Shown: positions 40,162 through 42,386 of the stretch, in pieces
How positions within the stretch are numbered: the stretch's first letter is position 1
Layout: each line of letters opens with the position of its first letter
Sequence record: NC_061450.1
DNA length: 64,000 nt
Reading direction: 5' to 3' (one strand)
Made by a program: the position numbers and the translations under genes
The notes under the pieces: model-generated
Database searches by the model: none
Told to the model about the DNA's origin: nothing
The model's input: only the letters and a program-made list of their open reading frames with translations

Positions 40162-40671
40162 ATGAGTGAGACTATGAACCACCAGTTTGATGACGAGTCG
40201 CAAGTTGCAATCAACACCGCTGTTCAGGAGGTGCGCAACATTCTTGCCGAGACACCTGTGGCTCCAATTGATATCGCAATTGCAGGTGCTCGTGTTTATC
40301 TGACAGTTGCCGAGCATCTTGGTGGTCACCCGCTTGATGTGCGTTTCGTACATGACAACAAAATTGTTAGCATGGCAATGCGTGTTACTACCGTGCCTAG
40401 TGACCAAGAGTTCGAAGCCAACGGCATTAACATCGAACATCAAAAGATGTTGACGATGGCTATCATGGATGGATTCGACAAGGCTGTTGAACTGGAAGTC
40501 ATCAGCGGTTATGAGCAGGGCGCGATGTTTGTTGCTGCCTTGCGTGTGTTGTATATGGGATTGGTTGAAGACCCAAGTGTTAAGGAACTTAGATTCCGAC
40601 ACAGCCAGAAAAACAACGTGATCAACATTTTAAATCCTGCCAGAGGAAACTCCGAAAATGAGAACGGTTAA
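40162..40671 (+). CDS. hypothetical early protein
   Basis: GAGGAG SD. Confidence 0.8.
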   Translation: MSETMNHQFDDESQVAINTAVQEVRNILAETPVAPIDIAIAGARVYLTVAEHLGGHPLDVRFVHDNKIVSMAMRVTTVPSDQEFEANGINIEHQKMLTMAIMDGFDKAVELEVISGYEQGAMFVAALRVLYMGLVEDPSVKELRFRHSQKNNVINILNPARGNSENENG

Positions 40672-40846
40672 CGATATTATCAAGGTGCTGAAAGAGCAGC
40701 GAGTAGTTACCATCCCACAGAGTCAGAGCAGCATTGTTCCTGACCTGTGCTTCACACTTGACGTGTGGTGCATTCCTCACCGTCGTCGTGATGTAGACAG
40801 CTTACAACATGGCCGTCAGGTGCGTATTGAACTGCGGAATAGTTAA
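40658..40846 (+). CDS. hypothetical protein
   Basis: GAGGA SD. Confidence 0.65.
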   Translation: MRTVNDIIKVLKEQRVVTIPQSQSSIVPDLCFTLDVWCIPHRRRDVDSLQHGRQVRIELRNS

Positions 40847-40854
40847 GCAGCGTT

Positions 40855-40881
40855 TGGCCCAGCAATTTGGGCCATTCTTTT
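40855..40881 (+). terminator. intrinsic terminator
   Basis: TGGCCCA-GCAATT-TGGGCCA-TTCTTTT. Confidence 0.65.
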
Positions 40882-40934
40882 AAGTGTTGTTCAAGACAGC
40901 ATTTAGACGAATATTAACCTGCTATCAGAATCTA

Positions 40935-40986
40935 CAAATACGTGGACAAAAGACGCGTTGTATCACGTTACTGATTGTGAGATAAT
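40935..40986 (+). promoter_or_regulatory. sigma70-type early promoter with upstream element, not followed by an ORF
   Basis: CAAAT-ACG-TGGACAAAAG; -35 TTGTAT 40958; 17 nt; TGa-GATAAT 40981. Confidence 0.75.
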
Positions 40987-40991
40987 AGACG

Positions 40992-41089
40992 TGCAGTATG
41001 AGACGTGAGGAATCGTACTGTAATTGACTGACAACTCTTTGGGCGTACAATCGGCCATCAACATTCCTGTGATTGTACGCTCCTTTTTC
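40992..41089 (+). ncRNA. candidate ~97-nt small RNA
   Basis: Own promoter; 10-bp stem TGCAGTATGA/TCGTACTGTA with 2 G.U pairs; 12-bp terminator stem GGGCGTACAATC/GATTGTACGCTC plus CTTTTT. Confidence 0.55.
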
Positions 41090-41200
41090 AAGTGGCTTTG
41101 AAGTTTAAGGCTACTTGCGAAAGGGTTCGATACCCTTTGAGCGCTGCCGGATTTACGCGGTTTTCACCGACAGTGCTCTCATGCTAAACCGCAAAGGAAA
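41089..41200 (+). ncRNA. structured leader or ncRNA with T-loop hairpin
   Basis: CAAGTGGCTTT/AAGGCTACTTG (2 G.U); AAAGGG-TTCGATA-CCCTTT; GAGCGCTG/CAGTGCTC; alternative GCGGTTT/AAACCGC next to the SD. Confidence 0.5.
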
Positions 41201-41205
41201 TAACC

Positions 41206-41778
41206 ATGCCAGAATTACGCAAGCCTCGTCCAGCAGATAAATTCTCTCAGGCACGCGCTGCAAAGAACTCTCCTGAAAGGCAAGAAGCCGCTGCGCAAAA
41301 GAAAATCTCACGCGGGCCTAAAGCATCTGGTCCTCGTCGCAATGCTATGCAGTTAGAATCGCCGACTAAGATTCGCGATGAAGAACGTGTGTTGAATCTT
41401 GTGCTGTTTATTCTACGCGGCTGGAAACAAGCAAAGGCTGATAGTGAAGCCAGCGCCTCACAGGGCATTATCAAAGTGAGTCGCAAGGAAATTGAAATCG
41501 CATTGCGTGATCTTAAAAACACGCGCTTCACTAAAATCCCGACGTTGATTAATGACGTGCTGGTCTATAACGAAATCGTTGCCGAGTTCGGACAGTGGGT
41601 GTATGTCGAGCACGACCATCCAGACTGGATGTTCATCTTAACGCCTCCGAGTGAGACGTTGGTAACGCGCTGCCGCATTCGTCGCAACAAAGAGACAGGC
41701 GACCTGACGCAACTTATTGCAAGTGAAGCGTTGCTGCCTGTAGAGGACGAATATGAAGAAGACGAGGAGAAAGAATAA
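41206..41778 (+). CDS. hypothetical protein with Arg/Lys-rich N-terminal arm and acidic tail
   Basis: AAAGGA SD; MPELRKPRPADK..KKISRGPKASGPRRN. Confidence 0.85.
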   Translation: MPELRKPRPADKFSQARAAKNSPERQEAAAQKKISRGPKASGPRRNAMQLESPTKIRDEERVLNLVLFILRGWKQAKADSEASASQGIIKVSRKEIEIALRDLKNTRFTKIPTLINDVLVYNEIVAEFGQWVYVEHDHPDWMFILTPPSETLVTRCRIRRNKETGDLTQLIASEALLPVEDEYEEDEEKE

Positions 41779-42068
41779 TGACTATTCAAACTCCTGCTGT
41801 TGTTGCTGAGTCGCTGGTGCATAACGCCCAAAATTATTTTGGGATCAAAGGTAAGTCCTGTACGCGATTTTCAACGACAGAGAAAAACATTCTGTTGCTG
41901 AGTGGTCATAATCGCTATCTTCCTGACGACTATGTTGACCAGCTCAAGCGTTCTTTTCACGATATTGATTGGCTGATGTTTAAAGTTGGCACTGACGACT
42001 ATGCTTTTTTAAGTCTCAGTCAAACCAAAAACTGGTCGCGTCTGTCAATGAAATATCTCGATAAATAA
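41778..42068 (+). CDS. hypothetical protein
   Basis: GAGGAG SD; TAATG coupling. Confidence 0.8.
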   Translation: MTIQTPAVVAESLVHNAQNYFGIKGKSCTRFSTTEKNILLLSGHNRYLPDDYVDQLKRSFHDIDWLMFKVGTDDYAFLSLSQTKNWSRLSMKYLDK

Positions 42069-42080
42069 TTCCTGACAAAT

Positions 42081-42305
42081 AAGAGGGCATCGCATCAGGT
42101 GCCACGATTATAAACTGCAAGCGATTTGCTGGCCCCTGTGCTTACCCACATCCCCCAAGATACAGAGTTGCATTGGGTGCCGGCTCTTTTTTGAAGTGTT
42201 CTGCGAGAGAGCGCTTCACAAAGGTATAGTCCATGATTGTTTCACTTAGACTGCTTATCGTCTCTATGTCCGATGATACGCGTGGCGATAAGCAGTCACT
42301 TTTTT
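42081..42305 (+). ncRNA. candidate structured ncRNA with C-rich loop
   Basis: Nested AAGAG/CTCTT, GGCATC/GGTGCC, TGCAA/TTGCA, CTGTG/TACAG around loop CTTACCCACATCCCCCAAGA; then an 11-bp GCGA-capped hairpin (2 G.U) and a 12-bp perfect terminator stem plus T-run. Confidence 0.5.
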
Positions 42306-42334: not shown

Positions 42335-42386
42335 CAAAAGCGTGGTCAAAATAGCTGTTGTGTTTGACCAGTCTTTATCGTACCAT
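42335..42386 (+). promoter_or_regulatory. sigma70-type early promoter with upstream element
   Basis: CAAAA-GCG-TGGTCAAAAT; -35 TTGTGT 42358; 17 nt; TACCAT 42381. Confidence 0.7.

Follow-up and report, generated by a model that had tools for sequence, protein, structure and literature searches.

The stretch of DNA analyzed here, hereafter the window, comprises the last 64 kb (64,000 nucleotides) of the Erwinia amylovora jumbo phage pEa_SNUABM_5 (MW366843, genus Rivsvirus, 267,169 bp), with window position 40600 corresponding to record position 243769. Within it, a promoter, a hairpin, and an intrinsic terminator follow one another in the 359-nt gap between gp327 and gp328, in a region of small plus-strand genes that are all annotated as hypothetical only (Table 1). 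The downstream gene gp328 has no match in Pfam, NCBIfam, or PDB, and its neighbor gp329 matches a PHROG of unknown function. The locus is labeled ‘hypothetical’ or left blank in all GenBank records, one of which carries a tRNA-Glu that is probably false. An initial sequence-only reading had described a promoter, a 10-bp hairpin, a 12-bp terminator, and a 9-codon ATG reading frame in this gap, and each of these is present where that reading placed it. A further terminator, T0, follows gp327 and is present only in pEa_SNUABM_5 and a close metagenomic relative, contig L033; in the other relatives, T0 is absent and the promoter lies directly after the upstream stop codon.

Table 1. Features of the gp327–gp329 region in window coordinates, with nucleotide identity to contig L033 where available.
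Feature	Position	Strand	Description	Identity to L033
gp326				78%
gp327	40658–40846			84%
Terminator T0	40855–40881	+	After gp327; 8-bp stem, then TTCTTTT tail; found by terminator scan	
Promoter	40931–40986	+	Predicted sigma-70-type with UP-like A-tracts; from sequence, family recurrence, and conservation in relatives	90%
A-tract/UP-like block	40935–40951	+	CAAA-N4-TGGACAAAA	
−35 element	40958–40963	+	TTGTAT, then 17-bp spacer	
Extended −10 element	40978–40986	+	TG-a-GATAAT	
Hairpin 1	40992–41023	+	5′-terminal; 10 bp; loop GACGUGAGGAA	91%
Spacer	41024–41040	+	Single-stranded; poorly conserved except for YUU abutting T1	65%
Promoter-like site P2	41024–41051	+	Internal; TTGACT-16-TACAAT; 10/12 matches	
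Intrinsic terminator T1	41041–41088	+	Stem 41041–41053 with 41070–41082, 12–13 bp; loop 16–18 nt	92%
T1 tail	41084–41088	+	U5, preceded by C41083	
Read-through leader of gp328	41089–41205	+	Hairpins 3–5 and pseudoknot	
Hairpin 3	41089–41117	+	Covarying stem	
Hairpin 4 (T-loop hairpin)	41120–41138	+	Covarying stem; perfect tRNA T-arm sequence GGGTTCGATACCC	
Hairpin 5	41139–41178	+	Covarying stem	
Pseudoknot	41157–41163 with 41186–41192	+	Hairpin 5 loop can pair with downstream partner; seven bases	
Shine-Dalgarno sequence	41194–41198	+	AAGGA; adjoins pseudoknot partner	
gp328–gp329 span	41206–42068	+	Genes served by the promoter	
gp328	41206–41778	+	190 aa	54%
gp329	41778–42068	+	96 aa	55%

The sequence-only reading had assigned the promoter to a family of early promoters, and the family is borne out by recurrence. 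The window contains eight copies of its core motif, TGGWCRAAA-N6-TWG, where 0.10 would be expected; every copy lies on the plus strand, and none of 100 shuffled sequences reaches eight. The copies also share an upstream CAAA tract, a −35-like TTG, and often an extended −10, and the motif looks like phased UP-type A-tracts placed on a sigma-70 promoter; the family presumably acts early. Transcription from the copy before gp328 is inferred to start at about 40993. A PF00562 search of the phage for an RNA polymerase gave no match while its positive controls worked, and a PF00940 search likewise gave none, but its control genomes were blank too; divergent enzymes could escape either search. Because no phage RNA polymerase was found, the host enzyme is the expected one.

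The seven other family promoters all lie 92–135 nt upstream of the first predicted open reading frame (of at least 40 aa); for the present promoter, the distance to gp328 is 263 nt. T1 is also the sole plus-strand terminator in the window that stands between a family promoter and any real reading frame, the customary order being terminator first and promoter second. Downstream of T1, neither a promoter scan nor comparison with relatives reveals a conserved promoter before the gp328 ATG. The internal site P2 was considered as a promoter and rejected: in L033 its −35 is deleted and its −10 reads TACCAC, and the other relatives have no P2, so that this pEa_SNUABM_5-specific site is probably a chance match.

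Relatives of the unit were located by synteny, because a blastn search of phages with the unit alone recovers only pEa_SNUABM_5 itself. They comprise Alexandravirus phages (Alexandra, AD1, many pEa_SNUABM phages, phB78, and 2910A), Yoloswag (Yoloswagvirus), the SNUABM_13/34 group, one IMG/VR genome, and the metagenome contigs L033 and L029. About 20 distinct relatives retain the succession of promoter, hairpin, and terminator; the promoter core and the CCUUUUU at the end of T1 are both nearly invariant among 17 of them. Metagenome contigs from four studies carry near-identical copies, in which positions 40935–41089 are unchanged except for one spacer base in one contig. Taken at the level of sequence comparison, the stretch is a real, evolutionarily maintained unit, and its expected product should be an RNA of ~92–96 nt with its own promoter and intrinsic terminator.

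T1 is under strong selection. Its stem amounts to −17 kcal/mol in pEa_SNUABM_5, and T1 contributes 8–17 kcal/mol in 13 lineages. Across the alignment, 99.4% of cells pair and nine of the 12 pairs have changed on both sides, a count restricted by leaving out two divergent metagenome contigs; none of 500 shuffles matches this covariation, and sliding the pairing partner abolishes the signal. Structural conservation in relatives, which the sequence-only reading had named as a check on its proposal, is thus found. Two compensatory pairs (A-U to C-G and U-A to C-G) are the sole differences in T1 between pEa_SNUABM_5 and L033, and the 18-nt loop is identical. That reading had also observed that all stem imperfections are G·T on the plus strand, and this holds here (the same pairs would be A·C on the minus strand) and in the relatives, whose stems likewise contain many U·G pairs. 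The many U·G pairs fix the plus strand as the RNA strand, and the earlier claim that RNA structure is under selection on this strand holds for both hairpins, T1 through its compensatory pairs and hairpin 1 through repeated rebuilding.

Hairpin 1 by itself folds at −12.5 kcal/mol (z = −4.6; 0/200 shuffles are equally stable), and the whole 103-nt stretch at −30.4 kcal/mol (z = −2.55). Its position is occupied by at least five different stem solutions among relatives, with variants in pEa_SNUABM_5/L033, SNUABM_13, SNUABM_30/phB78, L029, Yoloswag, and the class-B majority, and an additional one in a single metagenome contig. The loop GUGAGG is retained on four to five of these unrelated stems (pEa_SNUABM_5, L033, SNUABM_13, SNUABM_30, and one metagenome contig), yet this apex is restricted to a subset of relatives, here termed class A, and most Alexandravirus members (class B) carry a different, small-loop hairpin. 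Of the eight family transcripts, five open with a strong hairpin directly at their predicted start, with energies of −11 to −21 kcal/mol where the background for 45-nt windows is −8.1 ± 3.4 kcal/mol. Hairpin 1 thus follows a habit of the family rather than being a peculiarity of the ~95-nt RNA, and it probably protects the 5′ end of the transcript. Between the two hairpins, the spacer is the least conserved part: it has a 5-nt deletion relative to L033 and cannot be aligned across classes, with the exception of the YUU immediately 5′ of T1, in which T2 and T3 are invariant in the relatives’ alignment (A5). A kissing interaction between the loops of hairpin 1 and T1 (AGGAAU/AUUCCU), visible by eye in pEa_SNUABM_5 and L033, was rejected since it is missing in SNUABM_13, SNUABM_30, and class B.

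Nowhere in the locus is the DNA better conserved than beyond T1: positions 41089–41205 are retained across about 45 phages. Together with the upstream unit, this read-through segment gives gp328 a total leader of 213 nt, with T1 inside it. A 31-codon GTG reading frame at 41092–41187, equivalent to Yoloswag gp311, was tried as a small protein gene and set aside, its start not being conserved and its substitutions following the stems. T1 and hairpin 3 are never separated: SNUABM_30, phB78, and a groundwater contig without hairpins 4 and 5 all carry both, and Yoloswag has three such terminator-plus-hairpin pairs in the same spacer.

The decisive outside comparison for this leader is the Dickeya phage JA29 (Salmondvirus). 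Ahead of its gp328 homologue lie matching upstream promoter elements and a 5′ hairpin, followed directly before the gene by a homologous hairpin 5, pseudoknot, and Shine-Dalgarno sequence; one pseudoknot pair is C-G in the pEa_SNUABM_5 clade and G-C in JA29. The JA29 leader lacks T1, hairpin 3, and hairpin 4. Because JA29 has these matching elements and a homologous leader before the gp328 homologue, the promoter is by descent the promoter of gp328, and T1 is, as judged from these comparisons, part of a block that the Rivsvirus, Alexandravirus, and Yoloswagvirus lineage carries within the leader. A second informative case is the pair pEa_SNUABM_30 and phB78, which have lost gp328–gp329 but retain the promoter core, hairpin 1, an extra hairpin, and T1, with the next gene driven by a second copy of the promoter. 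Between these two phages, the transcribed unit differs by one change in 113 nt (99.1% identity) and the neighboring genes are 94–98% identical, although these are small numbers; three further changes fall in the hairpin 4 T-loop.

Several features of T1 set it apart from a conventional operon-end terminator. The loop is 10–18 nt long, a C precedes only five U’s, and the tail continues with non-U sequence, whereas the operon-end terminators of pEa_SNUABM_5 have GC-rich stems and UUCG tetraloops; T1 thus looks built to leak. Its loop is also the reason why a consensus terminator scan misses it, the loop being longer than 8 nt, and a looser scan recovers it. When T1 pairing is forbidden in folding, no conserved structure engages its 5′ arm as an antiterminator would, and no riboswitch or attenuator-type match to the leader is found in Rfam. 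Leader-peptide attenuation was likewise rejected: reading frames in the unit differ in start, frame, length, and sequence among relatives and lack ribosome-binding sites, and the sole ATG frame, of 9 codons (MRREESYCN), is not conserved. With neither a competing fold nor a conserved leader reading frame, T1 is not an RNA-switch or leader-peptide attenuator, and since it has no RNA switch, regulation, if any, must come from a factor.

These observations suggest that the gp328–gp329 leader contains an attenuator that is fixed or, at most, under the control of a factor, with the ~92–96-nt RNA as its obligatory product, a reading that we hold with evenly balanced confidence. A transcription brake is the most likely role, rather than a stand-alone RNA gene, because the unit fronts a two-gene operon, and the brake would be fixed or controlled by a protein at most because no alternative fold could switch T1 off. 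Host RNA polymerase would initiate at ~40993 from a strong promoter of the eight-member, presumably early, family, and the first 32 nt would fold into the 5′-terminal hairpin. About 50 nt later, the polymerase would reach T1 within the 213-nt leader, where part of the polymerases would stop at 41084–41088 and release a two-hairpin RNA of ~92–96 nt. The remaining polymerases would read through into hairpins 3–5 and the pseudoknot beside the ribosome-binding site, and then into gp328–gp329, whose expression T1 would dampen or delay. As T0 stops upstream transcription and no conserved promoter follows T1, gp328–gp329 would be fed only through T1. In most relatives, T1 is the sole terminator after the upstream operon and would additionally end it. 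T1 is not kept merely for that purpose, because the compensatory pairs separate pEa_SNUABM_5 from L033, both of which have T0; since T1 is maintained by compensatory change even beside T0, its role is tied to transcripts of the 40931–40986 promoter.

The same evidence bears on whether the short RNA has a function of its own. The sequence-only reading had proposed an early regulatory small RNA with its own promoter and terminator, and the part of that proposal that stands is the bounded RNA. An independent sRNA gene is not supported, given the other seven family promoters, each of which lies close before a reading frame, the JA29 gp328 promoter, which has no terminator, and the lack of a conserved promoter after T1. 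The specific kinds it named all failed when tested. A CsrA sponge sits poorly with a single GGA in the RNA, which reads GGU in SNUABM_13 and is missing in the class-B majority. As a Racr-type decoy, the RNA reaches a local score of only 6–8 against the CRR1, CRR2, and CRR4 repeats of E. amylovora (PMC9004355), and the best genome-wide ungapped matches to CRISPR repeats (19/28–29) lie outside the locus; for a ToxI-type antitoxin mimic, positions 40700–41400 contain no tandem repeat. An Rfam search of both strands at permissive thresholds, another check it had suggested, returned only a chance snoRNA-like match. A role as a replication-origin primer RNA was also considered and rejected, the GC-skew extremes lying at ~44 kb and ~198 kb, away from the locus. 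It is nevertheless possible, although we regard it as tentative, that the ~95-nt terminated RNA is a functional trans-acting early sRNA, perhaps besides attenuating gp328, with the GUGAGG loop serving as a protein or RNA contact and the U-rich stretch, terminator, and U-tail as an Hfq-type module. The unit has T0 on one side and T1 on the other in pEa_SNUABM_5, persists in pEa_SNUABM_30 and phB78 after the loss of gp328–gp329 with its promoter core and stems undamaged, and keeps the GUGAGG loop on different stems, the invariant YUU before T1, and, between pEa_SNUABM_5 and L033, the same T1 loop despite two stem changes; 5′UTR-derived sRNAs are, moreover, reported from other jumbo phages (PMC11512511). 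Against this, hairpin 1 in most Alexandravirus relatives lacks the GUGAGG loop, strong 5′ hairpins are common to five of the eight family transcripts, the spacer in which a pairing seed would lie is not conserved, the U-tail is just 5 nt, and complementarity to the phage genome is at chance level (longest match 13 nt, with ~13 expected); the deletion in SNUABM_30/phB78 may also be too recent to inform. An RNAduplex comparison of the short RNA with its own leader was uninformative. Attenuation alone leaves some of these features unexplained: retention of the unit in pEa_SNUABM_30/phB78 fits a product with its own function, protection of the 5′ end does not by itself need a GUGAGG loop on unrelated stems, and the U-rich stretch before T1 and the U-tail resemble an Hfq-binding module. 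A strong promoter followed by an immediate brake would also be a strange arrangement if neither the short RNA nor regulated read-through were important. Double duty would accommodate both sides, the unit acting as a gp328–gp329 attenuator and as a trans-acting early riboregulator whose C-GUGA-G/GUGAGG apex binds a host or phage factor and whose 3′ module recruits an RNA chaperone; this is rather doubtful, but if true it would account for the retention of the unit in the two phages that have lost gp328–gp329.

Other readings place the weight on T1 and its neighbors. T1 might be mainly an RNA-processing or stability element and insulator, with the short RNA as a by-product: if the AU-rich CUUUUU(A/C)AAG that separates T1 from hairpin 3 were cut, for example by RNase E, upstream RNAs would end in a protective hairpin, and the gp328 mRNA would begin with hairpin 3 as a new 5′ hairpin. 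The inseparability of T1 and hairpin 3 among relatives, the three terminator-plus-hairpin pairs of Yoloswag, the position of T1 as sole terminator behind the upstream operon in most relatives, and the ability of the U-run to pair with the A-run behind hairpin 3 in many of them all speak for processing, but a stem followed by U5 is a textbook intrinsic terminator whose 3′ end needs no cleavage, and compensatory change maintains T1 in both phages equipped with an upstream T0, which makes this reading improbable. We consider it very unlikely that T1 is the target of processive antitermination, as at lambda pR′-tR′ with Q or at nut/put sites, with the RNA accumulating until a phage factor acts. 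The lambda 6S RNA unit has the same architecture, with a promoter, then a short terminated RNA, and then the genes, and regulation of a terminator that has no RNA switch would need a factor; yet PF06530, PF03589, and PF06323 have no match in the phage (the PF06323 controls were blank too, and divergent factors would escape), the first 20 transcribed nucleotides contain no conserved −10-like pause element, the hairpin 1 sequences varying by lineage, and the other family promoters have no such terminator. Least credible by far is a degenerate tRNA or tRNA-like gene, as in the GenBank annotation of a 95-nt tRNA-Glu(ttc) over T1–hairpin 4 in pEa_SNUABM_13. ARAGORN reproduces that tRNA-Glu in the pEa_SNUABM_13 locus (L002), where the call depends on the T-loop hairpin, and hairpin 4 does carry a perfect T-arm sequence, but the program detects no tRNA anywhere in the window or in Yoloswag, the Rfam tRNA model gives nothing at E-values up to 10, and the ‘acceptor’ pairing of SNUABM_13 is not conserved. 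In most relatives, hairpin 3 has a tetraloop rather than an anticodon loop, and the ‘D-arm’ would be the covarying terminator T1.

Hardly any non-coding control elements have been annotated in jumbo phages. The promoter–hairpin–T1 unit, itself unannotated and absent from Rfam, is a well-supported addition to the premature-termination leader RNAs already known elsewhere. Since the unit is 90–92% identical to L033 and the genes are 54–84% identical, these phages care about the amount or timing of gp328–gp329, or about the short RNA itself. The unit offers a compact test case for premature termination in phage leaders, either as a dosage device or as a source of regulatory RNA, and its combination of a strong host-type promoter with a leaky terminator could serve the engineering of Erwinia phages against fire blight.

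Among known systems, the preferred reading of the unit as a leader attenuator recalls the lambda pR′-6S RNA-tR′ arrangement, in which a constitutive promoter produces a short RNA that stops at a terminator, and the genes beyond it rely entirely on Q-dependent read-through for their expression. The logic of promoter, terminated RNA, and read-through genes is the same, whereas the pEa_SNUABM_5 phage has no Q match and its unit no conserved promoter-proximal pause element; it lies among small genes with host-type promoters rather than before a late operon, and its RNA is ~95 nt long, compared with 194 nt for lambda 6S RNA. Hfq-dependent sRNAs carry a 3′ module made of a U-rich stretch, a terminator hairpin, and a poly-U tail. 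The pEa_SNUABM_5 RNA has, at the level of sequence, an invariant YUU followed by a stable terminator hairpin with a U-tail, but this tail is just five U’s long, there is no conserved single-stranded seed, and the 5′ end is buried in a hairpin.

Another parallel is Listeria Rli51, reported as a 5′UTR attenuator that also acts in trans (PMC11394854). Under the combined reading, the two would share a leader RNA that attenuates its own gene and a possible second role in trans; organism and sequence are unrelated. Racr RNA anti-CRISPRs, which mimic CRISPR repeats, are likewise small, promoter-driven, structured phage RNAs (PMC10651486), but the pEa_SNUABM_5 RNA resembles the E. amylovora CRR1/CRR2/CRR4 repeats solely in its C-GUGA-G apex. 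The jumbo phages 201phi2-1 and phiKZ, in which long-read RNA sequencing revealed short 5′ UTR RNAs made by premature termination, some of them positionally conserved across jumbo phage genera (PMC11512511), differ from pEa_SNUABM_5 in lineage, host, and polymerase, the promoter described here being sigma-70-like, and their RNAs were seen by sequencing, whereas the pEa_SNUABM_5 RNA is predicted from DNA. The likeness lies in the arrangement itself: 201phi2-1 sRNA005 and the phiKZ sRNA upstream of gp182 also have a start followed by a terminator within ~100 nt in a 5′ UTR (PMC11512511), and, like the unit before gp328, they hold a conserved position with respect to a homologous gene in related jumbo phages.

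The gp328 leader, which follows the intrinsic terminator (T1) of the predicted ~95-nt RNA, is the most highly conserved DNA at the locus across ~45 phages, and it has no match in Rfam. At its distal end, two segments likely pair as a pseudoknot directly adjoining the gp328 Shine-Dalgarno sequence; one of the pairs is G-C in Dickeya phage JA29 and C-G in pEa_SNUABM_5. The genes that follow have diverged far more: gp328 and gp329 (41206-42068) share only 54-55% DNA identity with the closest relative, a metagenomic one (L033:1501-2453), as against 78-84% for the upstream genes and 90-92% for the non-coding unit. Judged from these comparisons, gp328 and gp329 are rapidly evolving proteins preceded by a strongly conserved control region. 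The next promoter of the family, at 42343, lies shortly downstream of the tandem terminators that end the operon. Eight copies of this promoter were found in the window, compared with a chance expectation of 0.1; five of the eight have a strong hairpin at the transcript start, and these five hairpins share no common sequence.

Features of the gp328-gp329 locus and its promoter family in pEa_SNUABM_5 (window coordinates)
Feature	Position	Strand	Description
Promoter family, eight members	6298, 9251, 25381, 29828, 39578, 40943, 42343, 54725	+	CAAA-N4-TGGWCRAAA-N6-TWG, then -10
gp328 leader	41089-41205		3' of T1; three hairpins, covariation in each
T-loop hairpin (hairpin 4)	41120-41138		one of the leader hairpins
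Pseudoknot (likely)	41157-41163 with 41186-41192		
Operon-end terminators, two in tandem	within 42081-42305; ends 42187 and 42300		strong hairpin + U6; 3' end of gp328-gp329 operon

Relatives retain different portions of this architecture. The Salmondvirus form of the locus in JA29 (L030:1026-1181) has the promoter, a 5' hairpin, hairpin 5 (the last in the leader) with its pseudoknot, and a gp328 homologue, and lacks the terminator, hairpin 3 (the first in the leader) and the T-loop hairpin; T1 and these two hairpins thus form a single block that was gained or lost as one. Both pEa_SNUABM_30 (L015:743-1112) and phB78 (L016:743-1111) lack gp328-gp329 and retain the promoter, 5'-terminal hairpin 1, T1 and hairpins 3 and 4, with an additional hairpin between hairpin 1 and T1, a T-loop in the course of degeneration, and, after the retained block, a second promoter copy predicted to drive the gp330 homologue. 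A divergent groundwater metagenome contig (run X6, compared with 41031-41124) keeps T1 and hairpin 3, followed directly by a Shine-Dalgarno sequence and ATGCCAGCT; hairpins 4 and 5 are absent, and 139 other letters replace the upstream 141 nt. Another hairpin 1 variant, with the loop UGUGAGGA, occurs in a contig from run X7. In Yoloswag, the corresponding intergenic space (L003:2053-2600) spans 540 nt and contains three pairs, each consisting of a terminator and then an AAAG...CUUU hairpin, with the family promoter between pairs 1 and 2. Yoloswag's annotated gp311 (198 nt), which lies on top of the structured leader, is probably not a real gene.

In pEa_SNUABM_13 (MZ475891), both GenBank and ARAGORN call a 95-nt tRNA-Glu(ttc) (L002:2470-2564) that extends from the terminator through hairpin 3 to the T-loop hairpin. 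No relative has an equivalent, and the call is probably a false positive. The T-loop hairpin of pEa_SNUABM_5 carries the exact tRNA T-arm sequence AAAGGGTTCGATACCCTTT.
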